DNA of 64,000 nucleotides, taken from NCBI GenBank assembly GCA_051530055.1, contig CM121343.1:4000389-4064388 (forward strand), written 5' to 3'. The notes under the pieces are model-generated. The model was not told the DNA's origin. It did no database searches and was given only the letters and a program-made list of their open reading frames with translations. Numbering within the stretch: the stretch's first letter is position 1; each line of letters starts with the position of its first letter. The stretch is from Neoechinorhynchus agilis (Eukaryota; Animalia; Acanthocephala). A program made the translations under genes and the position numbers. Positions 20,139 to 51,450 of this stretch are shown here, one piece after another.

Positions 20139-22559
20139 CTAATTGTTCACTTGGATACATCCTGCAAGAAGTTCGTGCCCTCGCAACGAATTCGACGGAT
20201 GACTTTGGTTTGGCCATAGGTTACCAGGATCATCGATACGGGGCCGTAGTGCCACCAGTTCGCCGCCGCCGCCGCTGCTTGTTGCGTATATTAATGGAAA
20301 GCGAAGTACAAAGAATGAGTCATCTTTTAAATGTATTCTTCGATCAGAAGGAGAAAACAGAGGATTGCTTAGTCCGTGACGAACGCGTGGCTGTAGGTAT
20401 ATTGAAGATCTTGGTGGACATACTACGAACAAGCGCATCAATTGACCGAGATGGTTCGCTCCTACTGCACTGTTCATATCTCGAGTTCGTTCGGGACATC
20501 TTGAATAAAGAGGAAGTGTATCAGAAATGAAATTTGATTGGATCGGATTCATGTTTGGACTGGACAGAGTGTTAGGTTGCACTGATATCCATCGATGACC
20601 AAAATGGCACTCATACTCACATCCGACAAAGGCGATATTACCTGAACTTACACTATCGTCGATATTAGCCAATGGTACCAGTTTGTGAGTGACCAAATCG
20701 AGCGGGGCTAAAAAATTGGCTGGAATGAGGAAACCGGGTTGACCAGTGAGACCTATTTCATGGTCATAATCAAAATAATCGCCGATTCGACAAAGACTCC
20801 ATGATGAGCTCATTGAATCGCTGCTGTTCGTCGTCATTAGATTTGTTTCGACGTCATAATATTCGATCAGCCATTGGGATTTTCGATCAGCAATCACTCC
20901 TCTAAGATTTTTATAGAATTCAACATTTGCCTCAGTTAAAGTAAATGGATCATTTCGACTTGCTTGCGCACGTCCGCAATCACTAGCAGATTTAAAAGAG
21001 AATGTAGTTTCGTGAGCCATATCGTCCAAATTGTGCTTTGGATGCATACACATATGACCGGTTAGGCTGACAGTTTCACACGACTGATGGCCACTAGTGT
21101 GCCAATGAGTAGTTAACCGCTGCAGCAACTGCTCAGCATTGCAATCGATCTTTAGCTTCAGAGATTCTTCTATATGGCCGAATTTACGATTACATCCATC
21201 TCTAAACCATTTGAAGATCTTTTCACAAACCGAACGATGAACTCGTTCAGTGTAGTGATAATTTTGTTTGCGAGCCTGCTGTTGTTGCTGATGAAACTGC
21301 GGAGTGGTTCGCCAGTGATTGGGATGTTGTGGGAAGCAAATATGCTCGCATTCTTCGGTATACAGCTCAAACGCTTGGAGCGAAAGTTCGTCTAAGCACT
21401 CGTTCTCCATTCGATCAACCTCTTCAAGTCGTAAACGTTCATATTCAGCATCAGTAGGAGGAATGTGTCGAAAATGTTCAATCGCAAATTCAATCCCTCC
21501 ATAGCGACCATCAATCACCTGCTTTAGGATTCTCAGGCACTTGGTATAGTCCCACAAGGATCCAGAATCAATGATTTCCTCTTCATCAATTATGCGTCTA
21601 TTAATAATATCGTGGACTGTCGATCGGTAAGCACTGACGTTTGACCATTGGGCAAACACGTTTCCGCTAGTTGTATGTTCTTCAAATAAACCATCAATTA
21701 CGGTTGCCAGAAACCGAGCACTCCTGTCCATTTGTTCAATAGTCATCGACGTTCGTCTAAGAGTTTGTCGGACTGACTTACTAAATGAGTGATCTTCGTG
21801 CCCTTGAGTTAAAGGCGCAATGTCATTTAAGCAATCCTTCCAATCATATATAAATGAACTGCCATTTTCAAGCCACAAGAAGTCTTCCCATTCAGGCACA
21901 AGCAAGATATCGATTTCGCTCGAACGGAAAAATGTCCTGATTTCATTCTGGACAATGGACCTCTCTTCCTGTAAAGACACTCTACTGCCATTCTTGTTTT
22001 CCTTCGTCAGCAAAACAACCAAATTTGGACGACGCAACTGTTCACATTGATTCCATCGCTTCGTCGATGTGATCAGCAAAAATAATTGGCGCCATTTGTC
22101 ACTAGTGAGCCAAGAGTCATCATCATCGCAGACACATAGAATGTCTGAGATTGAAAGGCAGAAGGAAAGGGCGGGAGCAAACTCGGGTAACTGATCGTCA
22201 TCAGTTAGATCTCCGCCGATATCTAATACCAAAATTGGTCCATCTGAGTTCAATTTGGATCGTTCAACGTAATATTCGTTTATGATATAATTGCAGTGAT
22301 CAGGCAAAGGTTTTAGGCTGGAACCAACATAATCATCCATCAGAACAATACCTTCAAGAAAAGCCGATTTGTGATGGACGTTTGAACCAATCAGTAGAAT
22401 GACGCAAAATGCTCCGTTTCGGCGTTTGAATTTTTCTTCTTCGTTCAATGAAGACATGGATCCAGTAGATACTTGATATTCCTCAAAGCCATTCGATATC
22501 ACGGACCAGAAAGGATTCGTGGAGTCGATGTCCTTAGTGTCAGCGTCCCTCTCACTCAT
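20139..22559 (-). CDS. SMG8: Nonsense-mediated decay factor SMG8
   Basis: CETVSLTGHMCMHPKH, ASDCGRAQASRNDPFTLTEANVEFY, FVGCEYECHFGHRW, GQLMRLFVVCP and FVLRFPLIY match recalled SMG8 C-terminal motifs; single 806-aa exon. Confidence 0.8.
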   Translation of the reverse strand: MSERDADTKDIDSTNPFWSVISNGFEEYQVSTGSMSSLNEEEKFKRRNGAFCVILLIGSNVHHKSAFLEGIVLMDDYVGSSLKPLPDHCNYIINEYYVERSKLNSDGPILVLDIGGDLTDDDQLPEFAPALSFCLSISDILCVCDDDDSWLTSDKWRQLFLLITSTKRWNQCEQLRRPNLVVLLTKENKNGSRVSLQEERSIVQNEIRTFFRSSEIDILLVPEWEDFLWLENGSSFIYDWKDCLNDIAPLTQGHEDHSFSKSVRQTLRRTSMTIEQMDRSARFLATVIDGLFEEHTTSGNVFAQWSNVSAYRSTVHDIINRRIIDEEEIIDSGSLWDYTKCLRILKQVIDGRYGGIEFAIEHFRHIPPTDAEYERLRLEEVDRMENECLDELSLQAFELYTEECEHICFPQHPNHWRTTPQFHQQQQQARKQNYHYTERVHRSVCEKIFKWFRDGCNRKFGHIEESLKLKIDCNAEQLLQRLTTHWHTSGHQSCETVSLTGHMCMHPKHNLDDMAHETTFSFKSASDCGRAQASRNDPFTLTEANVEFYKNLRGVIADRKSQWLIEYYDVETNLMTTNSSDSMSSSWSLCRIGDYFDYDHEIGLTGQPGFLIPANFLAPLDLVTHKLVPLANIDDSVSSGNIAFVGCEYECHFGHRWISVQPNTLSSPNMNPIQSNFISDTLPLYSRCPERTRDMNSAVGANHLGQLMRLFVVCPPRSSIYLQPRVRHGLSNPLFSPSDRRIHLKDDSFFVLRFPLIYATSSGGGGELVALRPRIDDPGNLWPNQSHPSNSLRGHELLAGCIQVNN

Positions 22560-28354: not shown

Positions 28355-30712
28355 AAATTATTTACCGCGGATAAAGACTTGTAAACAATAATTCGGTAAT
28401 CATAAACCCTCCCGGTACTTCCTCACATATTGCCACTTGAACTATTTAAAGAAAATTTATTTTAAATACCTGATATCGTCTTGGGAGGACTGGAATTATT
28501 GCTTACAAGTCTTCAGCCGGTAAATAATTTTTTTTATTTAATAACAAACTGACGATTAAGCCTTTTTGCGTTGTTCAAAGAACGTTTTATCAAATTATTT
28601 ACCGCGGATAAAGACTTGTAAACAATAATTCGGTAATCATAAACCCTCCCGGTACTTCCTCACATATCGCCATTTGAACTATTTAAAGAAAATTTATTTT
28701 AAATACCTGATATCGTCTTGGGAGGACTGGAATTATTGTTTACAAGTCTTCAGCCGGTAAATAATTTTTTTATTTAATAACAAACTGACGATGAACCCTT
28801 TTTGCGTTGTTCAAAGAACGTTTTAACAAATTATTTACCGCGGATAAAGACTTGTAAACAATAATTCGTAATCATACAGCCCCCGGTACTTCCTCACATA
28901 TCGCCATTTGAACTATTTTTAGAATATTTATTTTAAATACCTGATATCGTCTTGGGAGGACTGGAATTATTGTTTACAAGTCTTCAGCCGGTAAATAATT
29001 TTTTTATTTAATAACAAACTGACAATGAACCCTTTTTGCGTTGTTCAAATAACGTTTTCACAAATTATTTACCGCGGATGAAGACTTGTAAACAATAATT
29101 CTGTAATCATACAGCCCCCGGTACTTCCTCACATATCGCCATTTGAACTATTTAAAGAAAATTTATTTTAAATACCTGATATCGTCTTGGGAGGACTGGA
29201 ATTATTGTTTACAAGTCTTCAGCCGGCAAATAATTTTTTTATTTAATAACAAACTGACGATTAAGCCTTTTTGCGTTGTTCAAAGAACGTTTTAACAAAT
29301 TATTTACCGCGGATAAAGACTTGTAAACAATAATTCGGTAATCATAAACCCCCCGGTACTTCCTCACATATCGCCATTTGAACTATTTAAAGAAAATTTA
29401 TTTTAAATACCTGATATCGTCTTGGGAGGACTGGAATTATTGTTTACAAGTCTTCAGCCGGTAAATAATTTTTTTATTTAATAACAAACTGACGATTAAG
29501 CCTTTTTGCGTTGTTCAAAGAACGTTTTAACAAATTATTTACCGCGGATAAAGACTTGTAAACAATAATTCGGTAATCATAAACCCCCCGGTACTTCCTC
29601 ACATATCGCCATTTGAACTATTTAAAGAAAATTTATTTTAAATACCTGATATCGTCTTGGGAGGACTGGAATCATTGTTTACAAGTCTTCAGCCGGTAAA
29701 TAATTTTTTTATTTAATAACAAACTGACGATTAACCCTTTTTGCGTTGTTCAAAGAACGTTTTAACAAATTATTTACCGCGGATAAAGACTTGTAAACAA
29801 TAATTCGGTAATCATACAGCCCCCGGTACTTCCTCACATATCGCCATTTGAACTATTTTTAGAATATTTATTTTAAATACCTGATATCGTCTTGGGAGGA
29901 CTGGAATTATTGTTTACAAGTCTTCAGCCGGTAAATAATTTTTTTATTTAATAACAAACTGACGATTAACCCTTTTTGCGTTGTTCAAAGAACGTTTTAA
30001 CAAATTATTTACCGCGGATAAAGACTTGTAAACAATAATTCTGTAATCATACAGCCCCCGGTACTTCCTCACATATCGCCATTTGAACTATTTAAAGAAA
30101 ATTTATTTTAAATACCTGATATCGTCTTGGGAGGACTGGAATCATTGTTTACAAGTCTTCAGCCGGTAAATAATTTATTTAATAACAAACTGACGATTAA
30201 CCCTTTTTGCGTTGTTCAAAGAACGTTTTAACAAATTATTTACCGCGGATAAAGACTTGTAAACAATAATTCTGTAATCATACAGCCCCCGGTACTTCCT
30301 CACATATCGCCATTTGAACTATTTTTAGAATATTTATTTTAAATACCTGATATCGTCTTGGGAGGACTGGAATCATTGTTTACAAGTCTTCAGCCGGTAA
30401 ATAATTTTTTTATTTAATAACAAACTGACAATGAACCCTTTTTGCGTTGTTCAAATAACGTTTTTCACAAATTATTTACCGCGGATGAAGACTTGTAAAC
30501 AATAATTCGGTAATCATACAGCCCCCGGTACTTCCTCACATATCGCCATTTGAACTATTTTTAGAATATTTATTTTAAATACCTGATATCGTCTTGGGAG
30601 GACTGGAATCATTGTTTACTAGTCTTCAGCCGGCAAATAATTTTTTTATTTAATAACAAACTGATGATGAACTCCTTCTACGTGGTTAAAAGAACGTTTT
30701 TAACAAATTATT
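28355..30712. repeat. Tandem array, 235-bp unit, about 10 copies; each unit is a fold-back with a hammerhead-like core in the linker
   Basis: Period 235 (AACGTTTT at 29286, 29521, 29756). Arm AAATTATTTACCG-CGGATA-AAGACTTGTAAACAATAATTC is the imperfect reverse complement of GAATTATTGTTTACAAGTCTT-CAGC-CGGTAAATAATTT. Confidence 0.97.
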
Positions 30713-31757
30713 GATCCAAAGAATTCAGGAATGTTTCGATTCTTTAGCATATTTGTGGCTCAGCCGGATAGATTTTTTAGTATATATTTGAGGTTGCTCA
30801 AATTCCCTTGGCTGATTTGGGCACACAGTCCAATGATTTATTAGCCAGGAAAGAACTGGTCTACGCTAAATACCCACGACCGTACAATTATGAGTCTGTA
30901 CATTCCTACGGATATTCAGATACCTCCCGAGGAGGCGGAACTCATCAGTGAGCTCCCTCTCTTCAACGAAGTATATCGTTCCCTTTGGTTATGGGTCATC
31001 GGCGGTAACGGATTCGAACCCTTGATCAAAACAATTCAGTAATGTTTCGATTCTTTGGCGACGGCTGATAATTTATTTTTCATTGGGCCCATCACCTACC
31101 GATCTGCTTCAGCGATTAAAATAACATTAATACCCCGGCAATGCCGCGGCCATCAAGGAAGCTGCCGAACAATCATAACCTATGGGTAATGCGGATTTGA
31201 TATGACTGCGAAATAGAATTTATACAGAAATTAATCGAATTTGAATACCCATGGGTGAGAGGTGATTTATTAAAAAATTCGAGGTCTCTAATTTAGCTAG
31301 TGCCTTAATATAATTCTTCTCCTTTATTACTACTGTTAAATCGTCGGCATGCATCGTGATTGAACGGCAAATCGAGCAATTACATACTATGTATTGGGAA
31401 ACTAGGCAAAATAAAATAGGCGATAAGGGAGAACCCTGGGGAACTCCTTTGAGTTACCAGTAAACGGGTCGTGTGGGATCATCCGCAAAGATAAACCGCT
31501 TTGAATATAATGTATTGTGGACCATGTGCTCGGAATAAAATGAAACATTTTTGATGGATCGATAATTTCGTCACGTTGCACATTCGGCGTATATGTAAAA
31601 AACAACTAAAAACTTGCCCACGCAGACCGGCAATCGGTTCGGACTGTAACTCGGTTCGTTCATGCGCGCAAATGTAGTTGGGAACAAAAATTGCGCTCTA
31701 GCGAAACCGAAGGAAGAGGTACCGCCAGATCCAAGGGATATTCGACGGAGGATTTTG

Positions 31758-32133
31758 ACCGAAAAAAGTACGGGTCAAGGTCCTCCTGGGCTTCTGACCT
31801 CAAAGTCATGTTTGCCGGCTTCTCGAATCAATTAGCTCGATACCATGATTTCGGTGAGATTGCCAAATGTATCGGTCTTCCGTTATACTGGAAAAGCTTA
31901 CTGTACAGAGCTGTGGGTGGTCGTCGGCGAAGCGAGAACATTACATACGACCAAGTCCACAATGTATGGAGCCGGCTATACGATCGCTGTAATGATCGCT
32001 GTTCGCAATTTCTCACTCTTATCACCGCGGGAAAGTCCAATGAGCGAAACAAGATCGAAAGCAAGGACTGGGATCACTTTATGCTCGACGTGGTAAACAC
32101 ACATCCGGGATTGGAGTTTTTAAAAAAGGCAAA
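31758..32133 (+). pseudogene. Inverted partial copy of PP2A B'' exon 1 (copy of 35737-35362)
   Basis: Reverse complement of the parent from ACCGAAAAAAGTACGGG to AAAAAAGGCAAA; encodes RKKYGSRSSWASDLKVMF...GLEFLKKA. Confidence 0.95.
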
Positions 32134-33029
32134 TAGTAAAAGATCCATTCTTTTGACCATTTCATTTCTTAGAGTGATGTTTACCTTGTACTTTGTAATT
32201 TGTCCTCTTCAGCGATTAGAAACCATACAAATTCCCAGTAAGACATTCGTCCCTGCCTTATCCTTTCCGTGTTGTACACGGCGGCACCGCTGAATATTCG
32301 ATCAATAATTCGTTTTGATATGGCTCTGTTATTATGTTCATAAAGGTCCAAATTTGAAATGAACAAATCGTGATCTGTGTCAATGTCCCAGAATTTACAG
32401 TAAATGACATAAAAGTGCTCATAAGAAAAGTAATCAGTCATTCGATTAATATCATTCTCGGTTTCCAGTTGTTCAATAGAGTCAAGGATATTGCTGTTTC
32501 TTAGTTCTCCAACAGTAATTTTTCCGTTCCATGATCGATTTACACTAAAATAGATTCTAGATATGACCTGTATATGATATGAACGCGTTTCAGAATGAAA
32601 ATAATATGGGAAAAAAGAGGCAAACCGTTATGCAATAGCGAGAAATGAATTCCTTTGCCTTTTTTAAAAACTCCAATCCCGGATGTGTGTTTACCACGTC
32701 GAGCATAAAGTGATCCCAGTCCTTGCTTTCGATCTTGTTTCGCTCATTGGACTTTCCCGCGGTGATAAGAGTGAGAAATTGCGAACAGCGATCATTACAG
32801 CGATCGTATAGCCGGCTCCATACATTGTGGACTTGGTCGTATGTAATGTTCTCGCTTCGCCGACGACCACCCACAGCTCTGTACAGTAAGCTTTTCCAGT
32901 ATAACGGAAGACCGATACATTTGGCAATCTCACCGAAATCATGGTATCGAGCTAATTGATTCGAGAAGCCGGCAAACATGACTTTGAGGTCAGAAGCCCA
33001 GGAGGACCTTGACCCGTACTTTTTTCGGT
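32133..33029 (-). pseudogene. Direct partial copy of PP2A B'' (34841-35737): end of exon 1, intron 1, exon 2, start of intron 2
   Basis: Matches the parent at a constant 2708-bp offset; intron retained; identical ORFs listed at 32181/34889 and 32590/35298. Confidence 0.95.
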
Positions 33030-33114
33030 ACAGTTGTCCGTCGACTTTAGATGATATTTTGAAAGCCGTCCTAGAATTTCATTCTTCGGGTTCTATCGAG
33101 GATCAAAAGCAAAT

Positions 33115-33780
33115 CTTTGTAAATTGATAAGTAAAGATCGGATTCTTAATCATTGCAAGATATCTTTCCTATTCGAGAATATTGGGACGATTTCTCTCGG
33201 TAGCCGAATTTAGTCTTTTCTACCGAAAATGGATATTTTTTAAGCAGATTAAAAGAATCTACAATTTTGAGCACATGAACAAAAGCGAAGCATTGTAAAT
33301 TGAAACGTAAAGATCGGATTAATCATTGCAAGATATCTTTCCTATTCGAGAATATTGGGACAATTTCTCTCGGTAGCCGAATTTAGTTTTTTCTACCGAA
33401 AATGAATATTTTTAAGCAGATTAAAAGAATCTAATATATTGAGCACATGAACAAAAGCAAAGCATTGTAAATTGATACGTAAGGATCGAATTCTAAATCA
33501 TTTCAAGATATCTTTCCTATTCGAGAATATTGGAACAATTTCTCTCGGCAGCCGAATTTAATTTTTTTATTCTGAAAATGGATATTTTTAAGCAGATTAA
33601 AAGAATCTACAATATTGAGCACATGAAAAAAAGCAAAGCATTGTAAATTGATACGTAAGGATCGAATTCTAAATCATTTCAAGATATCTTTCCTATTCGA
33701 GAATATTGGGACGATTTCCCTCGGCAGCCGAATTTAATTTTTTTTCTGAAAATGGATATTTTTGAAGAACGCTAAAAGAA
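33115..33780. repeat. Tandem array, ~175-bp unit, about 3.7 copies
   Basis: CATT(G/T)CAAGATATCTTTCCTATTCGAGAATATTGG at 33151, 33324, 33499 and 33675. Confidence 0.93.
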
Positions 33781-34159
33781 TTCAGTTTCTTAAGCACTAA
33801 AATATGCCAAATCTACAATTGTTAATTGTGCTTTTGGAATTTATATGGTGTGAATTTTCGAACTAGGACTTGATTCAGGTTGAGGGTTGGAAAGGAGAAT
33901 TCGATTCTACAAATTCTTTGAAAATCGCTTTGCTTAGTGTAGGGAGTTTGGACCGATTCTCTAATCTTGTTTACCTCTATTGGAAGCAAAAGAAAACATA
34001 ACTATTTATAACAACAAACGGGAACTCAAGGACGTAATGTTACAGATTGGAGAAGTTTACCACGGCTTTTCCAGTTGAATGTGCAGTTGTGGACGCCTTA
34101 TTTGCTTTGTCTTCATTGGTTAGATTATCCTTGTCGGTACTATTTTGAGCATATAAGTA

Positions 34160-36344
34160 TTAGACTAAAAGAAAAACCCTACACGTTTCATCATCTCCAG
34201 TCGTCGTTGAATTCTGTGCGTGATCCTCACGTATTAGAATTTCATACTCTTCAGCTGCATAACGAACCCAATTGCTTATTGGTGGACGCTCCGGTCCCTA
34301 AAGAAATCGTATTTCAACTAGAATCGTTATTCAACAACAACAACAAAGCAACAAACCGCCGTGTCAGCGAATGGGTCCTTTTGGTCATGATCAAGATATT
34401 TATGGATGTTTATGAAGGTGTCGAAAAAGAGGTGGGCCATTTTGCTTCGTTTCAAATCCATTAAACGTATTTTATTAACTTCCACTGGTCTAATCATGTC
34501 AAACATTTGACACATTAGGTCTTCAAACTGCATAAACTCGTAATTTAATTTCTCCAGTTGTTGAATCTGTTCCTCGTAAAAGTATTCCAGTTCGTACATG
34601 GACAATACGCCGTCACCGTCAGTGTCCATGATACGGAACCAGTACTCAATGCTAAATTAAGAAGGCAAAAGAATTTAATTTGTCACTCTAAAGTCCGATT
34701 CGTCATCAAAGAATGAAAACCCAGTTATGCTGACGGTTAATAAATGCTGCTTTTTTGCATTAAACCCATTTAGAGGACATGTTTCAACGCCATGACTCTA
34801 TGGGTTTTCGTGAGGAGAGTGTATTTCCAATAATTTAGCAATAGTAAAAGATCCATTCTTTTGACCATTTCATTTCTTAGAGTGATGTTTACCTTGTACT
34901 TTGTAATTTGTCCTCTTCAGCGATTAGAAACCATACAAATTCCCAGTAAGACATTCGTCCCTGCCTTATCCTTTCCGTGTTGTACACGGCGGCACCGCTG
35001 AATATTCGATCAATAATTCGTTTTGATATGGCTCTGTTATTATGTTCATAAAGGTCCAAATTTGAAATGAACAAATCGTGATCTGTGTCAATGTCCCAGA
35101 ATTTACAGTAAATGACATAAAAGTGCTCATAAGAAAAGTAATCAGTCATTCGATTAATATCATTCTCGGTTTCCAGTTGTTCAATAGAGTCAAGGATATT
35201 GCTGTTTCTTAGTTCTCCAACAGTAATTTTTCCGTTCCATGATCGATTTACACTAAAATAGATTCTAGATATGACCTGTATATGATATGAACGCGTTTCA
35301 GAATGAAAATAATATGGGAAAAAAGAGGCAAACCGTTATGCAATAGCGAGAAATGAATTCCTTTGCCTTTTTTAAAAACTCCAATCCCGGATGTGTGTTT
35401 ACCACGTCGAGCATAAAGTGATCCCAGTCCTTGCTTTCGATCTTGTTTCGCTCATTGGACTTTCCCGCGGTGATAAGAGTGAGAAATTGCGAACAGCGAT
35501 CATTACAGCGATCGTATAGCCGGCTCCATACATTGTGGACTTGGTCGTATGTAATGTTCTCGCTTCGCCGACGACCACCCACAGCTCTGTACAGTAAGCT
35601 TTTCCAGTATAACGGAAGACCGATACATTTGGCAATCTCACCGAAATCATGGTATCGAGCTAATTGATTCGAGAAGCCGGCAAACATGACTTTGAGGTCA
35701 GAAGCCCAGGAGGACCTTGACCCGTACTTTTTTCGGTACAATTGTCGGTAAGGAATAACTGTAAAGTGACCAATGGATAAAGGTTCGTCTTCGGAACCAG
35801 TGCCATCTTTCTCTCCCTCTTGCTGCTGCTGCTGCTGCTGCGTGGTCATGGTCGTCGTCGTCGTTGGTGTTTCGGTCGTCGTATCGTCCAAGGTAGTGAA
35901 AGTGACGACAGGCAACACGGACGAGACGGATAAACTACTTTGTTGATGATAGATTGGCGGTGCCGGTAAGTGTGGTCTATCCGGTGACGACGGCGAAGAT
36001 GATCCAGCACAGACTTCAGCGTTTTCAACTTTGGTCGAAACATAATCGCCTTTCGCAAGTCGCAAAGAGTCTTCACACTTTACAAATGAGGTGGAACCAT
36101 TTTCGAAATTAGAGAGCGCTCCTCTGAGAACGTCTTGAGTCTCCTGTTGAGTAAGCCACCTCAAGAACAGCTCATTCACTTTGCTTTGAAAAGAAGTCCT
36201 ATAATCACTGCTCTGCTGACAGGAAGAATGCGATGATGTATTCGACGAAGACGAGGATTGGCTGGTGGGGCTGATCACTCGCGATCCGTTAGTTCGTTCG
36301 ATTAAATTCGATGATTGCAACCTTTGACCGGAAGGGCCATTCAT
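34160..36344 (-). CDS. PPP2R3: PP2A regulatory subunit B'' (PR72/PR130 family, EF-hand), 4 exons
   Basis: VNTHPGLEFLK, YFSYEHFYVIYCKFWDIDTDHDL, RIIDRIFSG, EFVWFLIAEEDK, IEYWFRIMDTDGDGVLSMYELEYFYEEQ and DPFA...NWVRYAAEEYEIL; three GT-AG introns; last exon 34297-34160. Confidence 0.93.
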
Positions 36345-36631: not shown

Positions 36632-39600
36632 TCAATCCTTCCTCCGCATAGCGTACTTTTGCAATAAAAGCGGATTGGTCGGCGTGTTCATGATCAAGCG
36701 CCGCCTTTCTTCACGTGCTTTGACCTTCATCTCTTCCAACTCAGCGTCGCTCTGGGGTAAATGCCGATTTGTGGTGATGGGGGCAGTGGTGGCCGTCGCC
36801 GTCGCCGCCGCCGCCGCAGCAGCCGCCGCCGGCTTACGCTGGTTCTCAGAAGCCATCAATCGACCGTCCTTACCGACGACGGAACCGCTCATTGTACACT
36901 CACGACTCCTATTCACCATGTATTCCCCCCCTCCCCGCCTTATTCCTCCAACGTCACCTCCTACCCTGCCTCCTACTACCATTGTCGTCGTTTGTCGACG
37001 CATGTTAGAGGAGCTCATGCTCGAAGAATCATTCCGAGATTCCCGATTCCTATCTGCTGGGAAATCCCGATTGATCACTCCAGATCTACGCTCAGGAATA
37101 CCCTTAGTCATATTCTCAACTTGTTTCGATTCCTTCGTTGCCGATATCCTCAACAAACGCTCACGAATCTCAGTCGCCGACTCATGGTGCGTCTCACGTT
37201 GCAATGAAGCTTCTTGCTTCACTGCAACCGGCGATGGGGATTCACTCAACCTTCCAAGAGCCATTCCATCAGGTTGTTGCTTAGTTAGCGAATAACCCGT
37301 GTCTTTGGTCGGCGTTTTCAATCGATCACCTGCTGCCACCGCCATAGGCGGCCTCAACCGGACCTTTTTCCGTTCTGGGTGACCTGCTTTCCTTTCATCA
37401 CCCTTCTTAGGAGATCTTCTCCGTCTTACTGCTTTTGAAGAATCGTGGTTCAACAACTGTAATTGACCGCTTTTCCGTTGATTTTCTGAAGACCCGTGCG
37501 GCGGACTACTTCTGTTTTTCCGCTTTTGTGGTTTCATTCTTTTACCCTGGTGACTATTGCCTGGGAGTACCGACTGGGTCCTTTGCTGCTGTCGTTGTTG
37601 CACGTAATGCTGAGAAGATTCGGTCTGTGGTAGTGAACTAGACGAAGGAAGGTGTGGTTGTGAACTATAAGAAGCCTGCGACTGCCTATTGTTGACCATA
37701 GAGGTCGGCTGATTCGTTGTGGACGACGGAACTGTTGGCTTCGGAGGAGTATACTGCAATGCCCGAAGTCTTTTAAGCTTTGCATCACGAAGAGCCGTGC
37801 CGTATGCCTCATGCTTTGATGCCACGTATTCGCGGACTTGTGTAATGACCTCTTGGCTCATTTTGTCAAAGGGAATCTCCAGTGCTTCGAAGTCACTTTC
37901 TTCCAATATTGATTGGATGTTTGGAATCAAAAGTAAAAGAGGCAAAAGATCATCCTGAGACAATTCCTGGATGCATTTTGATAAGTACTCTTCCTCAGCG
38001 AAGTTCATTTTAAAATTCGTCATATCTTCAATCGTCATTTCATTCACGTCTTTATCAGGCAATACGCATTCCTCGCCTTTACTGCTTTTATCCTTCTTAT
38101 GTTTACTGCTCTGAGACGTCGTTGAAGAATCATCCACTGGAGGTGCAATAAAGGATTTTGCTGTCCCTACCGTACCTTCGGATTTAAAAAAAGTTTGTTG
38201 CTTTATTGGCGGCGGTTTGACCTTCCTAGCCATCTCTTCCTTTCTATGTACATTTTCAGTGATACTTGATTTAAAAGTTCCGTTATTTCTGGCTTCTAAG
38301 ATGACAGGATCCCTGATTTCAACCAATTTCGCCTCAGCTAAAGGAGCGGCGATCACTTCTCTTATAGGCGCCTCTGCTGGCCTCTGCTTATAGCCACTTA
38401 CGGTAACCATCAATGGTTCCGCGCCTGATTTTGAAGGGGATAATTCGTCCTTTGCTTGAGCATTACAAACTAATACATCGGATGAAAGCTTTTTCCGCTT
38501 AGCTTCAATATCTTCTAATCGACCGGATGCTATTTCAAATTCAGAACATTTAATCCGTTCCGACTTTCGAGAGGAACTCGTCTGCCGGATTCTTCGTTTT
38601 CTGGCTAGTGGCGTTCTTGGGGGTACCTGTGCGTTATCATCCAGAAGACTTTCTCCGATCTCTATCATAAATTCCAAATTCTCAATAATAACTTCGGCTC
38701 GTTCAATATCCACTACATGAGAAACTGAAGTTCTTAGACGTGTCATAATATTGTCAAGGGTATCAATATTCTTCACTATTGCCGCCGAAACCTCGTCAAA
38801 TGCACCACACTTCTCATCATCACGCGTCTCTTGGGTAACCACCACCTCTTTTGCTAGTAATCGTGGTTGAGTTGGTACCGCAGCAACGGCAGAAGAAGAA
38901 AGCGGCGGTGGGCTGGGCGACGGCACCGATGGTGGTTGCGGCGGCGGCGGCGGCGGTGGTGGTGGTTGCGGCGGCGGCGGCAGCGGCGGTGGACTTGGCA
39001 GTGGAAGTGTTTGCTGTGTTGTTTCTTCCAAAACGGCTTCCGGCACGATCGGAGCAACTGGTTGCGGCGCTGAAGGAATGGTTGGCACGGTGGCTGCTGA
39101 ATCTACGGCTACATCTTCTGACTGGGTGGTTGTGTTGTCAAGTTTTATGATATTTGTTGAAAGTTCACTCAATAGTTTCTCCGCGGCCTGCTCGAATTTT
39201 CTCCCAAGTCGGCCATAGAAAGATCCTCTGCCGTTATAATCATAGCAGTTGGCCACGATCAATCGTAAGTCTGCCTTGAACAACTCTACGTCGTCACCAT
39301 ACTCAATTGAATAAATTTTGGACTTTATTGTTGATAAATCCATAGGATTTTTTATGATTTGAAAATAATCGTCAATTCGTAGAATACTTCGGTCGAGTGG
39401 TGCATGAAAAGGCTGCGTGAACGAGTACTTTACAGGGTCGGTTAGCAAATCGTCAACGACTTGCAAGCATAATGTCATTTTAGCAGACAGTGGAGCGATT
39501 GGTGCGGCCAGCAGAGGTGGTGGTGGTGGTGGTGGCGGCGGTGGTGGTTTTGCAGTACTCTGTGCAGCGACGGTTAAATCAGTTTCATTCACAGTTGTAG

Positions 39601-40360
39601 CACACGGAGGGGCATTGGGCTGTACAGCGGAAGCTGCCTTCACAGACTGACGTTGACTCGGTAACGGTTGTGGTGGTAATGGATTTGATTCCGCGAGTGC
39701 CGATCTGTTGTTTTTTTCAACAACTTTTCTTCGCTTTAATTGTTTGTTTGTTGCGCCGTATTCGTTAGGAGGCGAATCGAGTGAGAACAGTTCAGCGAGA
39801 GACTCCTTAGTTCGTTTTCTTCGGTTTTTCTGAACCGTCGTGGACGACTGAGTAGGCAAAGAGTGTGTCCTCAAATCGGGACTTTCGAAGGATAACATCA
39901 GCTCTTCCCTGAAGCAGCAGGCTAAGCCGCGGCACATTACGTGGACGTCCTCCGATGGTTTATTGTAAACCATGCAATTAAGCAACATAATGTTAACGTC
40001 AGAAATAAATTCGTTCTGATTCGTATAATAGTCACCGTTGAGTTTTTCGCGAATTGTCTGTAAGTCCATCGGTTTACCCACAATGCTCGGGTAGTCCGGT
40101 AAATCAAGCCCAAAATCAAATACCGGTTTATGGAATGGCCAAGCATATTTATAACGGTGAACTATATTCCATGTAGTCTTAGCAGCGAGTAAGCCATTTG
40201 TCTGTCTTGTCACACCTTCGCTGGAAGCAAGAAGACCAGCGATCTCGATGCTCAACCTCGTCGCCGCTAATTGATCATTTTCATGTTTATCGTTTACCTT
40301 GGATAAATCCGCTGATGCCGCCGCCACATTTCCTTCCTTATCTAACACATCGGACTCCAT
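36632..40360 (-). CDS. BET-family double-bromodomain protein (BRD4/fs(1)h long-form-like), single exon
   Basis: BD1 AWPFHKPV...PDYPSIVGKPMDLQTIREKL...NCMVYNKP; BD2 PFHAPLD...DYFQIIKNPMDLSTIKSKI...NCYDYN; ET-like MNFAEEEYLSKCIQEL...LEIPFDKM; C-terminal AREERRRL resembling the BRD4 CTM. First ATG 40360. Confidence 0.88.
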   Translation of the reverse strand: MESDVLDKEGNVAAASADLSKVNDKHENDQLAATRLSIEIAGLLASSEGVTRQTNGLLAAKTTWNIVHRYKYAWPFHKPVFDFGLDLPDYPSIVGKPMDLQTIREKLNGDYYTNQNEFISDVNIMLLNCMVYNKPSEDVHVMCRGLACCFREELMLSFESPDLRTHSLPTQSSTTVQKNRRKRTKESLAELFSLDSPPNEYGATNKQLKRRKVVEKNNRSALAESNPLPPQPLPSQRQSVKAASAVQPNAPPCATTVNETDLTVAAQSTAKPPPPPPPPPPPLLAAPIAPLSAKMTLCLQVVDDLLTDPVKYSFTQPFHAPLDRSILRIDDYFQIIKNPMDLSTIKSKIYSIEYGDDVELFKADLRLIVANCYDYNGRGSFYGRLGRKFEQAAEKLLSELSTNIIKLDNTTTQSEDVAVDSAATVPTIPSAPQPVAPIVPEAVLEETTQQTLPLPSPPPLPPPPQPPPPPPPPPQPPSVPSPSPPPLSSSAVAAVPTQPRLLAKEVVVTQETRDDEKCGAFDEVSAAIVKNIDTLDNIMTRLRTSVSHVVDIERAEVIIENLEFMIEIGESLLDDNAQVPPRTPLARKRRIRQTSSSRKSERIKCSEFEIASGRLEDIEAKRKKLSSDVLVCNAQAKDELSPSKSGAEPLMVTVSGYKQRPAEAPIREVIAAPLAEAKLVEIRDPVILEARNNGTFKSSITENVHRKEEMARKVKPPPIKQQTFFKSEGTVGTAKSFIAPPVDDSSTTSQSSKHKKDKSSKGEECVLPDKDVNEMTIEDMTNFKMNFAEEEYLSKCIQELSQDDLLPLLLLIPNIQSILEESDFEALEIPFDKMSQEVITQVREYVASKHEAYGTALRDAKLKRLRALQYTPPKPTVPSSTTNQPTSMVNNRQSQASYSSQPHLPSSSSLPQTESSQHYVQQRQQQRTQSVLPGNSHQGKRMKPQKRKNRSSPPHGSSENQRKSGQLQLLNHDSSKAVRRRRSPKKGDERKAGHPERKKVRLRPPMAVAAGDRLKTPTKDTGYSLTKQQPDGMALGRLSESPSPVAVKQEASLQRETHHESATEIRERLLRISATKESKQVENMTKGIPERRSGVINRDFPADRNRESRNDSSSMSSSNMRRQTTTMVVGGRVGGDVGGIRRGGGEYMVNRSRECTMSGSVVGKDGRLMASENQRKPAAAAAAAAATATATTAPITTNRHLPQSDAELEEMKVKAREERRRLIMNTPTNPLLLQKYAMRRKD

Positions 40361-42588
40361 AGCGGTGAACGATTGTGTAGCCCTCAATCGAAATGTCTCT
40401 GACAAAAATGTGATCAGGGATTGTGGCTTAACAAAAATCAATCAGAAAAAATCAATCAAAATGGAAGAACGTTAAAGGTGACTCCTTTAAGAGTGCCCAT
40501 CTACAGAGGAAGAATTGAAATTCTACCCCCTCAGGTCCCCAGGGAACATTCTTCGAGAGTATGAACTCTTGGGGAAATAACGACGATCTCATGATTTTCG
40601 TGTTTCTATGGTGTCTGTGGAAGTAAATCAGAACTTTCTAAGCCTTCCTGAACGGAATACCGAGAGCACCATTCATGTCACATTGAACTATGCACAAAAC
40701 GATTATGCCGGAAATTTAGAATGAAACTAACGATATACCGAGATCTTGAGTAAAAAAGAATCTTCGAGTGACAAGAAAAATAACCCAGCAGCTAAAAGTG
40801 CCATTTTTAACAATTGTGGCAAAAAATTGACGAGGCAACTATTGGGAACCACTACCCAACGATATTGAGCTATCGGGACGCTCATGAAAATAACGCGTTT
40901 TACGAGAGGGGATTCTTCCGTGGATATAGCGAGCTATCAAATACACTTTAGGCCCTAATCCAAGAGCACTCAAAGTTAAACAAATGTTGGAATTTAACCC
41001 TTTTTTTGTTAGAATGTAGTTTCAACGTGGAACAATTGGGTGGTGGGCTTTGATATTAAGAGTGAGAAATTTCGGCCTTAAGGAGTGTTTGTGAACTTTT
41101 TTCTATTCCTCTCTGGCTCACACGATTGCACGTTCGCTTCTTTTTGTTGTAAAAATTTAAATATGAAGCCGAAACAGCGAGGAAGAGGAATCCTAACACC
41201 TACGTCATCTACGTTGCTATGACGTCAACTTAAGTGCGCAATTGTAAACGTTATGAAGTGTGTTAAAATGATAGCGCTTCTCCAAAATATCGAACGGCGG
41301 GAATACCTTATCTTTGAAATTGTCACAACCTCGTCGTACTCTTTCCATTTGTTCCTTGATAATACTTCATTTGACCAAAAAAAGCATAGTCAGACCGGAG
41401 ACTTTCGGACATCTAGCAAATTCACGGAGATCAACATGGAGTCTAAACTCAAAACGATATTTTTCTCGCAAAGTTATTTAATAGCGGTCTTAATTTCCAT
41501 TTGTATCAGAAATGTGTCCGTCGTCCCGTGGATTTTTACCTTTGACGTCACCGATTCTTGTACCAATTTTAGCGCACAGTGAATGTTTCTAGACCTCCTT
41601 ACATATCGACCATTCTATCGGGGTTTTTGATGATTAACCCATACAAAATCTTGAGAATTTTTCATTTCTAAAATTCGTACGCTATTAGAAATTATAGTTG
41701 TAGGCAATACCTTGGATAATCGCCGAATTTAATCGAACGTCTGTCCTTCCACTCTGCTTCCAAGAACCATGCTTAAAAGCTGATGAGAAACCTTCAGGTC
41801 GTTGAAAAAAGAGGAACTTGAAGCTCTTTACAGTTTTCCGCTCGGTTGGGCTCTTCTACTGTCCAGCAGAAATCTACGAAAGTTGGCAACTAGAAGAACC
41901 CACTGCAGATTCGATGACGGCGCGGATCTTATAATTCGACCGAACGGATGGGTCCCCAGGATAAAAGCGGTATTTTATTGAGATATTTCGAAAGAGGAAG
42001 CCTCGTCAGTCATCTTAAAAGGTTTGTGTTCAGGTTCGCAGAGGATCGCCATTCCCGAGGTTTGAAGACCGCGTGTCCACTCGTACAAACGAGGTGAGGC
42101 CTCCTCGCTAAATATCTTCAATAAAATATGTGTGTTTTAAAGGAATAATTGATTAAATCTGCAATTTAGGTCATTTCATTGCCTTTGCTGCAAAAAGGAG
42201 GGTTATGGCATAACTGCGATGAAACTCACGTCTTTAGTTTTAAATCCGAAATGGAGCAATGGATCGGTAGAGCCTTAAACCGGTCGCTAATGAACTAGCA
42301 CGTCTACTACTTTCAGTTAATGCTGTGGCACTGATGTAGAAGGAGCCATTAATTCTTGTGGTCAGTATGGTACCGTTTTTCTCTTGGAAAATCTTAGATT
42401 TTACGTAAGGATATGTTTATAAATTATGGAACATCTCCATTACCTTTTGCTCGCATCTAATCTGAGACTAAATCGTCGATCTCAATTTATCTGGAAAACG
42501 CGCACTCTGATCGCTTCCACACGTACGATTAAAATTGTCGTTGAATTAAAAAAAATATATAATGAAAACATTTTTGCATCCACAATCT

Positions 42589-42753
42589 GGGGCTCAGTGG
42601 CATAAGCACGCTCAAAATGCGCTCGATAGGTCGTTGGGTTCCACGGGGGTCGCGAGGCTGCTCTAAGGGTGGGGTCAGGTTTTGAGATCGCCCATTGACC
42701 CCATGCCCTTCGAGGGCGACTAAGCGCTTCCGAAAGTTAGCCAAGAGGCCCCC
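42589..42753 (+). mobile_element. GC-rich tRNA-derived SINE-like sequence (duplicated at ~47787-47951)
   Basis: A-box-like GGGGCTCAGTGG followed ~40 nt later by degenerate B-box GGGTTCCACG, in an isolated GC-rich patch; no cloverleaf. Confidence 0.3.
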
Positions 42754-42815
42754 AAAAAAAGATTGCGATTTAAGATAATAAATCCACAAGATGGAAACAG
42801 AACATTTATCAAACG

Positions 42816-45503
42816 CTATTTGAGTTCACTTCCACGGTCATTCTTATAATCGTTCAAGGTGCTTCTCAAGACTTTGACCGTTCGAAACATAAATATTTTA
42901 CGCTGCGTACTATATGGCAATAAGTGAACATTGACATTCTCGTCCATACAAATTTGATCAGTACATTCCTCCAGGTCCTTGTAAGCCGAAACATCACTGA
43001 ACACACTGAAATCGTTTGTAACACAATCCGTATTGGCTTTGGCACAAACTCTGAGTTCGCATATGTATTTATACATCTTCTTGATAAGATTTATCATTAA
43101 TAAGATAATCTTGTCGCTGACGAGCTGTCTAAACTTGTACCTGACTAAGGTGTGCGAATGAATTGAAACTCCAAGTATCAAAGCCGTATATGCTGCCAAA
43201 AGACTGTTGTGAAAACTCGTGAGGCAACGTGATTTCAATAAGGATATCCCATCCATACCAGACTGCGATTCTTTATTGCAATAATCGTTGAATGTGGGTA
43301 GTCTTTAGAGATTTTTTTGATTTTAACATCTATTACAAAAAATATCTATCGTGCTCATCTTTATCAATCACTTTAGACGATAGTAAAAAACCGAAAAATT
43401 CAAGGCAATATATTACAAGAAAACGTTTATAAAATTTAGTAATGTGGAACCTCTTAATAATCGATGAACAAATCCATTAGCATTCGAATTACTGAGTTGA
43501 GAAGCGGTTAGGTAATAAACTTAAATATAAGAGGAGAACCCAGGACTAAGAAGAATGAAATTTAAACATCAACGTTTACAGTCTTAAGAGCATCGTCGAA
43601 GCATTTGAAATTTTCTGAGTCTTGTTTCACGACTTGCCCGATTTTCAATTGAAAAAACCTCGTTAAAGATCCCAGGAGGTCAAGAGAATCCGATTCCTGC
43701 GATTGCTTAAGTAGAGACTTGAATAGTGGATTCTTCGGGTCTACTGAAAAATTGCCGAGACTGCATAATAAGAGATAAGAAATTGTATAAGAGCGTGGTT
43801 CTGGATCGGATCCAAACTTCTTTATGGTGGTAATCATGTCTTTTAAGAAATCCATTGACGAATCGTTTAAGATCCTTTCCGAAACGGCATGCGATCGTGA
43901 CGTTAAATGGAACAAAACCCAACAAGCGTTCTCCACTATTTCGTTCGTCAGCATATCAATGGAATGGATAGAAATAACGTCCTTTAAAATGATTCCAATA
44001 GATTCCGCCAAGGAAAGTGCGGAAGCAATGTCATTTATTATTTTGCTCGAAAACCTCCCTTCGCTTTCATACATTCCAGTTACGGACGAAATTATACTGT
44101 TGACAATGGTAAAATACTTAAGCATAAGGAGTGATTTCCAACTTGTTAGATGAATGATTTTCGAAGAGGAGATGTTAACAACTGTCATACATTGAATCTC
44201 CTTTATTACATATTGGTTGAGCCGAGTTAAGTAATCGACTAGAGTTAATTGTGCTTGTTCAGAAAAAGAATCAATCGCACGATTTCCTTCGTCGGACAAG
44301 ATTGAGAAATCACTTAGACTGTCATGTAGGCCTTCAGAATGGTTTCCTAATATTTTGTTCGCGTGAATAAATTTACATACTTTTGCAACAACATCAGCAA
44401 TTAAAAGATTACATGACATTTCAGACAAATAATAACGAGTAAGTTCTTTTTCTGCAGGTGGAATCGCTCGAGACAGTATACTGCAGAATTTAGGAACGGA
44501 GTACTGTTGATATCGTCGAGAGTATTCCACCAAATCACAAAGTAATTGGAAATATTCAATCAGAATGTCAGGAGAACACGGGATGACCGATTGGTGAATT
44601 GTCATCGCCCATACAAGTACAAGAATAGGTTGAAAAAGAATGCGTTCGCCATGAACGCTAACATTTATCTCATGAGCCGTTTTTGCCAGGGAAAGTACAA
44701 TGTTCTCACCAAAACACCCTTTCCGTTCAGATTTATGTTCGATTGACTCCAATTGCGGAATCAATATCCTATCGAGTAAAGCATCGATTTCCTCTAACGT
44801 CAAAAAACAGATTTTCGTTATCGATTGTAACAAGAACTCAAAATTTACGATATGGATTTTCTCTCGATATGATTAATAGATGCTTTGTATCGATAATTTG
44901 AAGACAAGATTAATTCAAACCAACTGTGAGAACATCTCAGGTGTTTTTTACATTAACTACAGCCAATATGACAAAAAATAAATTTAACAAAACCCCCACC
45001 TAAATGGAAACTTCGCATAATGCCCTAGGAAAATCTCAATTGTTAAAAAATAGAAAATCTGTTCTTGTGGCGTGTAATTTAGCACTCGCCAAAAATCTTT
45101 TCGACGTTATAACTTCCATGTGTCGCTCAGCATTGGCAATAAAGTTCGCTATAAACTGTTCCTCGTTGTTCTTTTCCATTTCGAGAAGTTTTAATCGAAG
45201 TGCAGCAATCTCAGCGGTTTCAATAACTACTACATCATCGTTTCCATTTGCCGATTTCGTACGTTTTCCATCAAAATCGACTTTTATGCGATGATCAGGC
45301 ACCGTATCGAGTGTATCATCTTTAGGCGGCGGCGGCAACCTTCCCATCGAAGAATCCTTCTTCTCACTACTTTGACCACACTTATTTTCCTCGGCTAACC
45401 TAGCCGCAAGCTTCAAACTTGCAGATTTTACGATCTTACCAAAGGCTCGATCCCGGTGCCCAGTCGTGTTCTTTGAAGTATTCTTCTTTTCGGATGTGGG
45501 CAT
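42816..45503 (-). CDS. WAPL: Probable WAPL (cohesin release factor), multi-exon, divergent
   Basis: FHNSLLAAYTALILG...MINLIKKMYKYI resembles the WAPL C-terminus (DCIVASYTALLLG...MTEMLKKFLSFM). VLFHLTSRSHAVSERI and PEPRSYTISYLLLCSLGNF resemble VLLNLTNDNEWGSTKT and PQEQRFDIRVLGLGLLINL. Whether ORF 45036-45503 is the first exon is not resolved. Confidence 0.6.
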
Positions 45504-45855
45504 ATCTCTTGAAGATCACTAAATGTGGACCAATTCAATCGCTCACAAGCTAAGCCACACGATGCATGAATGAAAAATTAAAACGATAAAACCACAAAAC
45601 CAGTGTTAAGGCGAAAAAACCCATTAACGACCAAATCGATCGTCGATGATGCAATTAAACAAAAATATTAATTTTCCTTCTTTCGCGGCAATGTTCCATC
45701 ATGAAATTTCACTGCGATTTGTACGAATGTTCGAACTTATAGATTAGATCTTTTTTTAAAAAAAATGTCCCCACATTTGAATTTTTTAACATTACGCATC
45801 GTCCTTCTTAGTTGAAGGCCACTAAGTTGCCAAATTGTTCAATAATCCATTCGAG

Positions 45856-46585
45856 CGGTGCCTGATCATCGCATAAAAGTCGATTTTGATGGAAAACGTA
45901 CGAAATCGGCAAATGGAAACGATGATGTAGTAGTTATTGAAACCGCTGAGATTGCTGCACTTCGATTAAAACTTCTCGAAATGGAAAAGAACAACGAGGA
46001 ACAGTTTATAGCGAACTTTATTGCCAATGCTGAGCGGCACATGGAAGTTATAACGTCGAAAAGATTTTTGGCGAGTGCTAAATTACACGCCGCAAGAACA
46101 GATTTTCTATTTTTTAACAATTGAGATTTTCCTAGGGCATTATGCGAAGTTTCCATTTAGGTAGGGGTTTTGTTAAATTTATTTTTTGTCATATTGGCTG
46201 TAGTTAATGTAAAAAACACCTGAGATGTTCTCACAGTTGGTTTGAATTAATCTTGTCTTCAAATTATCGATACAAAGCATCTATTAATCATATCGAGAGA
46301 AAATCCATATCGTAAATTTTGAGTTCTTGTTACAATCGATAACGAAAATCTGTTTTTTGACGTTAGAGGAAATCGATGCTTTACTCGATAGGATATTGAT
46401 TCCGCAATTGGAGTCAATCGAACATAAATCTGAACGGAAAGGGTGTTTTGGTGAGAACATTGTACTTTCCCTGGCAAAAACGGCTCATGAGATAAATGTT
46501 AGCGTCCATGGCGAACGCATTCTTTTTCAACCTATTCTTGTACTTGTATGGGCGATGACAATTCACCAATCGGTCATCCCGTGTT
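45856..46585 (+). pseudogene. Inverted copy (730 bp) of 44575-45304, 5' region of the WAPL-like locus
   Basis: Reverse-complement match with about 4 substitutions seen (e.g. HATRT vs HAART); duplicated ORFs 45858-46124 and 46327-46587. Confidence 0.93.
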
Positions 46586-48337: not shown

Positions 48338-48881
48338 AGCGAATTATTATATAGTTGAATTATTTTTGATAATTTTCGGCTTTCGCGTAGGCCTTCTTCA
48401 GTCTATCTAAAATGCACTCAAGAAGCACTCAATTTCGTTTATCCGGTAGTTTTCTCAAGATTGAGTTTGTAATCCGTTTTGTTGCTTACAAACGTATCCG
48501 TTTTTGTATCATGATGGCCTCTGTCGTACACTCCGCGTACGAATCTGAGTGCCATCAAAATTAATCTGGTGCCCACGGGACACCATTGTCGAATTCAGTC
48601 CTCTTTAAGGCTGCTCTTCGGTGCTCGGCAATCCTTCTTTTCAGATTGTTCGTTTGTCCCACATATGAAATGACACATTCAGCAGGAACATCCTCATTCT
48701 TCGGCCGAATCGTGAACTCCTTATCCTTGTTATTTCGGGGTTATATAACAAAAAGGGCAGGACTCCACAGTGTACTTCGGCCGAAGAATGAGGATGTTCC
48801 TGCTGAATGTGTCTACAAGATCCCATGTTCCAACTGCAATCTATCTCATATGTGGGACAAACGAACAATCTAAAAAGAAGG
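48338..48881 (-). mobile_element. Penelope-like element remnant: GIY-YIG 3' end (minus, 48709-48338) with an inverted 5' segment (plus, ~48720-48881)
   Basis: Plus strand LHSVLRPKNEDVPAECVYKIPCSNCN(fs)YVGQTNNLKRR. Minus strand YVGQTNNLKRRIAEHRRA...GHQINFDGTQI...EAIMIQK, then a hammerhead motif. The inversion point falls on the palindrome TTCGGCCGAA. Confidence 0.82.
48366..48405 (-). ncRNA. Minimal type-I hammerhead ribozyme at the Penelope-like 3' end
   Basis: GA-CTGAAGA-A-GGC[CTACGCGAAA]GCC-GAAA-ATT-A-TC: intact core, palindromic AATT stem III, UUA cleavage triplet; stem I only 2 bp. Confidence 0.65.
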
Positions 48882-50741: not shown

Positions 50742-51359
50742 AATAAAACACTTCTGAAAAGAATTACAAGAATAAATTAGACTTTGGAAAAAACTATCTG
50801 ATAATTCGCCATAAAAAAGTAAATGATGAACATCTTTACAACATTACGAAGTGTATTCGTTTGTATCAAACCAATTTAAAATATCCATATTTGGTCAGAA
50901 ATCGAAGGGGGATCAGGAGGCGTGGAAGGCCGAGAAAACGATGGAAAGATTGAGTGGCTGAGGTGTCACCTTTACGGAGGAATGTGTGAAGTCTTTGGAC
51001 TGCAAGTTTTTGTGCGACCCCGGGAAGGAAAAGCATGAAGTTGAGGCTGTTGGTCAGAAATCACATGTGTCCTAGGCGAAGCTAGCATGTCCGACAAATC
51101 TGTTAGGAACCCTGAACATTAATAAGCAAAATGGACACTTTTTCGTTGTGCCCAACGATAATCCAGAATCAGTTGGGGCTATAAAATTGCAGCAGACCAC
51201 ACAGACTCCCGTTAACATCTCAACTTCCATTTTTGCCATGGAAATGTGTGGATCTGATGCAGATATTTTCTGGTGATGAGGAAAATAGAGATTGGCTTAT
51301 TTATTCTCATTAAATTTCGTCCGTATCGTTGGACGTCTTGAGGTTGTTTGAAAGTTAAC

Positions 51360-51450
51360 CTGAAAAAGTCGGACGAACGAAATTTAATGGGAAATAATAA
51401 ACCAATCTCTATTCTTCTCATCACCAAAAAATACATATATATGAACAATT
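51360..51450 (+). mobile_element. Possible decayed LINE reverse-transcriptase fragment
   Basis: KKSDERNLMGNNKPISILLITKK resembles the LINE motif KKGD...NYRPISLL; very short. Confidence 0.35.

Follow-up and report, generated by a model that had tools for sequence, protein, structure and literature searches.

Fold-back inverted duplications are known from the human germline, from cancer and from yeast, and are portrayed (PMC3907307, PMC10622511, PMC7467729, PMC2621351) as an inverted and a non-inverted copy separated by a single-copy spacer, joined at 2-nt inverted microhomology and accompanied by changes and short templated insertions beside their junctions. Here we describe a structure that shares the two copies, the spacer and the changes beside the junctions, and whose fold-back junction has 2 nt of microhomology. 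It lies in a 64-kb stretch of the acanthocephalan Neoechinorhynchus agilis (assembly GCA_051530055.1, contig CM121343.1, positions 4,000,389 to 4,064,388; hereafter the window, within which all coordinates are counted), where two opposed fragments of a gene for the PP2A regulatory subunit B'' form a hairpin next to the intact gene. All of 21 human inverted duplications had a spacer (766 bp–70 kb), and their microhomology measured 2–8 bp, mostly 2 bp (PMC3907307). In yeast, very short templated inverted duplications and insertions arise at breaks by fold-back (PMC11724301), and a model of microhomology-mediated break-induced replication (MMBIR) is set out in PMC2621351. The PP2A B'' event differs from the published cases in scale, 0.4–0.9 kb as opposed to kilobases or megabases, and its 520-nt spacer falls below the human range. 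It is also interstitial: the copies are inserted 2.7 kb from their template, and neither a terminal deletion nor a dicentric chromosome accompanies them.

Inverted duplicates of genes are also the material from which some small-RNA loci are made. In young plant MIRNA genes that arose by inverted duplication, and at the pseudogene loci that yield endogenous small interfering RNAs (endo-siRNAs) in mouse oocytes, the later target exists also as an inverted duplicate, whose long hairpin feeds RNA interference. What sets those loci apart from the PP2A B'' hairpin is their demonstrated transcription and small-RNA output. The closest likeness is to the hairpin RNAs (hpRNAs) of Drosophila (D. simulans, D. 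melanogaster; Dsim-hp58, hp-Nmy, hp-ODox1; PMC10317233), which are likewise inverted repeats of a protein-coding gene fragment near the progenitor, with near-perfect arm complementarity and arms antisense to a parent exon. Dsim-hp58, for example, lies one gene from its progenitor and is an inverted repeat of an exon-2 fragment, and some of the hpRNAs newly arisen in D. simulans are expressed from transcription units that already existed (PMC10317233). Membership of this class rests on Dcr-2-dependent siRNAs of ~21 nt and on up-regulation of the pri-hairpin and the target in dcr-2 mutants (PMC10317233); the present hairpin is a candidate read from DNA. Drosophila hpRNAs differ further in that they typically target young testis or meiotic-drive genes rather than a conserved PP2A regulatory subunit, in that their hosts are arthropods whereas protein similarities place the present host outside that group, and in that the PP2A B'' hairpin keeps an intron and exon 2 in its loop. 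The kind of object described here is thus already known, both as a fold-back inverted duplication and as hpRNA raw material.

Anatomy of the hairpin and its parent gene

Repeat finding and self-BLAST over the whole window placed the hairpin arms at 31758–32133 and 32654–33029, each 376 nt long, 100% complementary to one another and spaced by 520 nt, confirming a sequence-only reading of this DNA that had described inverted exon-1 copies around a 520-nt loop. Because the inverted repeat is perfect over 376 nt, a chance origin is excluded. Other inverted repeats in the window are much shorter or less perfect, save one large one (44575–46585). The left arm is the 100% reverse complement of parent positions 35362–35737. 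The right arm belongs to a longer direct copy detected by BLAST, in which 32132–33041 reproduces parent 34840–35749 over 910 nt at 99.78%. The sense strands of the left and right copies converge, so the fragments stand tail to tail as had been proposed, and the suggested distance of 1.1 kb from the parent stop codon was measured as 1115 nt (from 34160, where the stop codon ends, to the outer end of the hairpin at 33044). The parts of the structure and of its source are as follows.

36344–35334, 35275–34893, 34651–34357 and 34297–34160, minus strand: exons of the parent gene (sequence-derived gene model)
34840–35749, minus strand: source segment, running from exon 1 (416 nt) through intron 1 and exon 2 into intron 2 (53 nt) (BLAST)
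35362–35737, minus strand: parent stretch identical to both arms, about residues 203–328, covering the P2R3B EF-hand and the first half of EF-hand_13
31758–32133, plus strand: left arm, with exon 1 sense on the plus strand; the open reading frame (ORF) 31691–32293 (plus) matches P2R3B_EF-hand and EF-hand_13
32134–32653, minus strand: loop or spacer of 520 nt, with the end of exon 1 (32653–32626), intron 1 (32625–32568), exon 2 (32567–32185) and the start of intron 2 (32184–32134)
32654–33029, minus strand: right arm, with exon 1 sense on the minus strand
32132–33041, minus strand: truncated direct copy, intron retained, with a 246-aa ORF after splicing out of intron 1

Read along the plus strand, the left flank is followed by TCGACGGA, an 8-nt patch, parent 35737 to 35362 in reverse complement, the AA junction, parent 34840 to 35749, the trinucleotide CGA and then the right flank. 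Beyond CGA (TCG on the minus strand) come 56 nt of unique sequence, a 176-bp satellite (33104–33763) and the 3' end of the parent gene. The exon and intron coordinates of the loop were carried over from the parent model with an offset of 2708, giving 28 nt of exon 1, 58 nt of intron 1, 383 nt of exon 2 and 53 nt of intron 2, with 2 nt in common with the arm. The loop therefore holds intron 1 and exon 2, as had been noticed, but also the last 28 nt of exon 1 and the 53 nt of intron 2. Within the hairpin, 32134–32653 is present only once, that is, as a single-copy spacer. Since intron 1 and part of intron 2 were kept, the duplicate is a DNA-level copy and not a retrocopy.

The intact parent gene lies on the minus strand (36344–34160) and encodes a PP2A regulatory subunit B'' (PR72/PR70, PPP2R3) of 608 aa in four exons; the model, built from the minus-strand sequence, has GT-AG introns of 58, 241 and 59 nt. 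Its product carries the B''-specific EF-hand domains (Pfam: EF-hand_13, PF17958, 1.7e-26; P2R3B_EF-hand, PF21161) together with EF-hand_7 (PF13499), and it is similar over its full length to known B'' subunits. The copied part matches the PR70/PR72 crystal structures 4MEW, 4I5L and 4I5J in the PDB at E = 1e-66 to 1e-76, with 4MEW and 4I5L at E ~1e-76. These domains and structures agree with the identification of the gene made from sequence alone. A search returned 1892 homologues of the parent product, named PP2A B'', with top identities of 58–60%; the closest are a transcript contig of SRR6291294 and the acanthocephalan Pomphorhynchus laevis (58–60%), and bdelloid rotifers stand at 52–55%.

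The public record has a gene call of 246 aa over the right copy (32181–32979, minus strand) with P2R3B_EF-hand and EF-hand_13 domains. Its predicted product aligns to PR70 core residues 25–262 of PDB 4MEW, the first two-thirds of the core, without the EF-hand_7 pair and the C-terminus. The call is a prediction, and as evidence of expression it counts for nothing; if it were expressed, the product would be a truncated B'' subunit.

Junctions, copying order and age

The outer ends of the two copies contain three short features.

33030–33044, minus strand: outer junction of the right copy, with 12 parent-derived nt including two mismatches (33033, 33039), followed by non-parental TCG (33042–33044)
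31742–31749, plus strand: outer end of the left arm, TCGACGGA, equal to right copy 33044–33037, with three non-parental nt and one mismatch to the parent
31750–31757, plus strand: 8-nt patch GGATTTTG, standing in place of CAACTGT in the right arm

With these ends included, the inverted repeat can be extended to 392 nt (31742–32133 against 33044–32654) with four mismatches and one gap. An 8-mer common to both copies is thus real (31742–31749 and 33044–33037), although its distance from the perfect arms is 8 and 7 nt and not the 9–10 nt first reported. On both arms TCGACGGA carries the non-parental TCG and the same C>G mismatch to the parent. Because these are common to both, the left arm is no separate copy of the parent but was made from the right copy or from the same nascent strand, which bears out the earlier suggestion of one intermediate.

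At the fold-back junction (32132–32133), a three-way comparison gave GGCAAA/TAGTAAAAG in the hairpin against parental GGCAAA/GGAATTC and TTTAGCAA/TAGTAAAAG. The exact microhomology is AA, 2 nt; the GCAA originally proposed requires a 1-nt slip. Microhomology of 2 nt is the commonest class among the human cases, yet ~13% of simulated junctions reach it by chance (PMC3907307). Changes are concentrated at the breakpoints: the 910-nt direct copy has two mismatches in total (33033, 33039), both within its outermost 12 nt, and none in the other 898 nt, and the 8-nt patch likewise sits at an outer end. When the patch and its neighbours (GGAGGAttTTGACC, 31747–31760) were compared with the reverse complement of 31773–31786, 12 of 14 positions matched. 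The resulting 14-bp local stem has a folding energy of −10.9 kcal/mol (equivalent right-arm sequence, −7.0; parental sequence, −5.4), and a near-match this close has p ~0.006 in a post hoc test that uses 9 background near-matches of this kind in 128 kb. The patch looks like a short templated inverted insertion.

The parental breakpoint site (35731–35750; copies at 33022–33041 and 31758–31772) is itself a small palindrome in exon 1, GTAC-N8-GTAC, and the outer breakpoint of both arms falls there; a short hairpin at this site may have favoured the template switch. At the insertion site, no target-site duplication or direct repeat was found at 31741/33045, where the flanks read ...GGGATAT and CTTTAGATG..., and the flanks have no homology to each other, to the gene or to the satellite, local alignments scoring at shuffle level.

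How old is the duplication? Between the copies there are no differences in 376 + 898 nt, whereas a neighbouring inverted duplication in the window differs by ~0.55%. At the age of that neighbour, ~7 differences would be expected in the PP2A B'' duplicate and none are seen, so the PP2A B'' duplicate is younger than its neighbour or is being homogenised. The very young age claimed from the first inspection is borne out by this count.

What is the mechanism that produced this structure? The single-copy spacer, the 2-nt inverted microhomology and the junction errors with a templated insertion are together hallmarks of fold-back priming or microhomology-mediated template switching. We give a probability of about 60% to the reading that the locus is a real, very recent local structural mutation, made most likely by error-prone fold-back or template-switch synthesis of the MMBIR or fold-back-priming type; the repair mechanism and the present lack of function are what we infer, on top of the structure, its derivation, the copying order, the junction signatures and the young age reported above. 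In this proposal, (i) a strand synthesised leftward from intergenic position 33045 would have switched to PP2A B'' at ~35749 and copied 910 nt in sense orientation; (ii) at parent 34840 the strand would have folded back at the AA/TT microhomology, 522 nt behind its 3' end, and copied its own first 392 nt in reverse; and (iii) near the end of this copy a brief snap-back detour would have left the 8-nt patch, after which the left flank was rejoined at 31741. Two separate events, a direct copy and then a fold-back, could have followed an alternative course to the same product. The truncated gene-fragment pair is most likely neutral or transient, and it can recombine with its parent.

Several points weigh against this reading. 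The structure is known from one assembly, so its three junctions have no independent support, and the three copies are fully identical, as an artefact or ongoing gene conversion would also make them. The 2-nt microhomology is weak when taken alone (the ~13% of simulated junctions in PMC3907307), and the snap-back reading of the patch is post hoc and requires two extra G>A changes. Absence of function, finally, is an assumption of the reading and not a result.

A second event in the window bears on the same question. Some 12 kb from the hairpin, inverted arms at 44575–45319 and 45842–46585 are arranged head to head (730 nt ungapped at 99%, spacer 522–551 nt) on either side of the 5' end of an uncharacterised gene read from the minus strand (ATG at 45503). 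The arms adjoin a 1.75-kb direct copy (46585–48337) of 41387–43142 at 99.66%, joined at 46585, so that the whole complex spans 41387–48337. The sister event (44575–48337) thus has the same three-junction architecture of an inverted copy plus a direct copy. Its differences also cluster at junctions, with five in the innermost 15 nt of the arms and two of the three direct-copy substitutions at most 47 nt from the junction, and the divergence of its body is 0.2–0.55%, which shows such structures to be real and inherited in this genome. By BLAST coordinates the fold-back distance is 522 nt in both events; as the end of the older one is fuzzy and there are two cases only, this common distance is a lead, not a result.

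Possible small-RNA function, artefact and other explanations

Could the duplicate be more than a by-product of repair? A transcript entering from either side would fold into a 376-bp perfect duplex, a Dicer-type substrate fully complementary to parent exon 1. The locus might accordingly be a functional or nascent hpRNA locus, with PP2A B'' read-through or its own promoter as the source of the transcript, and its diced duplex would yield siRNAs that repress the parent; we consider this unlikely. In its favour, the perfect stem with its 520-nt loop folds at −893 kcal/mol, and both arms are 100% complementary to parent exon 1 (35362–35737) and so include a strand antisense to the presumed target. 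Read on the minus strand, the parent is followed by the sense arm, the loop and then the antisense arm; neither AATAAA nor ATTAAA occurs on that strand within or just beyond the hairpin; and a direct precedent exists in those de novo hpRNAs of D. simulans that originated beside their progenitor (PMC10317233). Against it, three canonical poly(A) hexamers (33738, 33571 and 33562, minus strand) precede the hairpin, lying between the stop codon and the hairpin in the satellite, so that read-through is possible but not expected by default.

Evidence for a separate promoter did not hold up either: the (GC)n promoter-like motif reported before the left arm is a single GCGCGC at 31664, and this hexamer is commonplace, occurring at ~9 loci in the window. 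A scan for bacterial-type promoters and terminators performed at chance level and is irrelevant for a eukaryote, and Rfam gave no match anywhere in the window. The would-be target is a conserved housekeeping regulator, unlike the young selfish testis-type genes that Drosophila hpRNAs typically suppress. With zero divergence there has been no time for selection. The older neighbouring inverted repeat, in which strand-biased G·U-preserving substitutions were looked for, shows no bias (two on each strand, by itself an uninformative count). Such indications as the sequence gives are weak and do not agree with one another. By analogy with the hpRNAs of D. simulans, an hpRNA or siRNA function is plausible, and a regulatory interpretation of the duplicate is unproven. 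The boldest version, an hpRNA at the moment of its origin in a poorly sampled, non-arthropod animal lineage, in which fold-backs of ~0.5-kb spacer would recur (two in 64 kb) and set perfect hairpins next to their parent genes, and in which siRNAs from this one would already tune PP2A B'' dosage, is a long shot.

An artefact of assembly or of whole-genome amplification is distinctly unlikely in our view. Here the structure would be an inversion chimera of the type made by phi29 polymerase in multiple displacement amplification (MDA), or a misjoined read, fixed in the consensus. According to PMC1855051, more than 85% of MDA chimeras are inverted with an intervening deletion, having primed on 2–21 nt of complementarity; the PP2A B'' structure is alike in its inverted junction, its intervening deletion and its short complementarity, and its inner junction would suit a chimera of this kind. 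Over 376 nt the three copies do not differ, no independent assembly exists, and the lineage seems poorly sampled and, speculatively, the animal may be small enough to have required amplification. Set against this, an artefact would need three novel junctions within 1.3 kb and then a return to intergenic sequence; from MDA chimeras the structure differs in having three junctions, mismatches close to them and, on either side, unique sequence of a chromosome-scale assembly. Nor do the outer junctions reproduce their templates exactly: two mismatches in 12 nt and a patch unlike the template are unexpected if the parent was copied in vitro by a high-fidelity polymerase. The copies together occupy no more than 4.6 kb, a length that single long reads can resolve, and the locus is internal to a chromosome-scale record of 7.8 Mb (CM121343.1) with unique flanks. 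The sister structure 12 kb away has diverged by 0.2–1.2% and is therefore not a read chimera. Exact look-ups for independent assemblies returned no match to the junction-spanning ORF (31808–32293), the parent exon-1 ORF or the right-copy ORF, and a 24-mer ending at the fold-back junction had 0 matches in metagenome contigs. The worry about an artefact, raised when the hairpin was first noticed, is reduced, since there are mismatches close to the junctions and three junctions would be needed; it is not removed.

The copies could also be an older palindrome of PP2A B'' fragments whose interior has been homogenised by recurrent gene conversion, so that only the outermost 12–17 nt show its true age. 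Inverted-repeat arms convert readily, a mere 1.8 kb separates the direct copy from the parental one, and every difference is found at the outer edges, the place at which conversion tracts would be expected to stop. Yet the contrast between the left and right outer ends takes the form of a block (8 identical nt, then an 8/7-nt replacement) and not of scattered substitutions, the flanks have no residual homology, and conversion would have to span intron and loop, 898 nt, without one difference left. We hold this to be highly unlikely, and prefer the recent fold-back or template-switch event. Transposon capture or insertion of gene fragments (a Pack-type element with terminal inverted repeats (TIRs), a foldback element or a Helitron) is barely credible and was rejected: terminal inverted sequences and a satellite-rich intergenic setting would suit it, but no target-site duplication was found, the supposed TIRs consist of the gene fragment, and the 64-kb window contains no other copies and no transposase-like ORF. 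Two further readings were rejected outright, namely a retrocopy or processed pseudogene (intron 1 and 53 nt of intron 2 kept, no poly(A) tract) and an extended palindrome or satellite-derived flanks (flank alignments at shuffle level; a satellite nhmmer profile matching 33101–33800 only).

Surroundings and significance of the locus

The hairpin occupies a gene-poor intergenic stretch of ~6.5 kb between two satellites, and short satellites are abundant in the window.

28355–30712: 235-bp satellite, 10 copies, 96% matches
33104–33763: 176-bp satellite, 3.8 units, 91%, between the hairpin and the parent 3' end and containing the first poly(A) hexamers downstream of the gene
9202–10294: tandem array, 106 bp x 10.4
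12227–13299: tandem array, 439 bp x 2.4
58394–59021: tandem array, 194 bp x 3.2

The 176-bp satellite was found nowhere else in the 64-kb window. Small palindromic elements occur at 48633–48881, 51264–51433, 1116–1254 and 59675–59759, and one of these small elements consists of perfect 38-nt arms with 66 nt between them, themselves enclosed by 39-nt arms at 95%; they might be old fold-back remnants or resemble miniature inverted-repeat transposable elements. Immediately upstream of PP2A B'' (36632–40441, minus strand) lies a gene for a double-bromodomain BET-like protein; its ORF, of at least 1269 aa, has long homopolymeric tracts of Ala, Pro and Gln. Elsewhere, an 806-aa single-exon ORF of the Smg8/Smg9 family (20139–22559, minus strand) found only itself in a word-seeded search of 5.8 billion proteins, which suggests, from sequence, a fast-evolving or poorly sampled lineage.

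For the PP2A B'' locus itself, the duplication has created structural instability, since direct repeats now stand at a distance of 1.8 kb and inverted repeats at 3.2 kb. Without transcription, the hairpin would be a young segmental duplication of the ordinary sort. What gives it value is that it is very young and unusually clean and has a somewhat older counterpart nearby, in a lineage without described cases. If the junctions are real, it is a very clean snapshot of a hairpin-capable locus made from its own target gene, and its three intact junctions with readable repair signatures, together with the older sister event, would make the step from structural mutation to small-RNA gene testable in this species.

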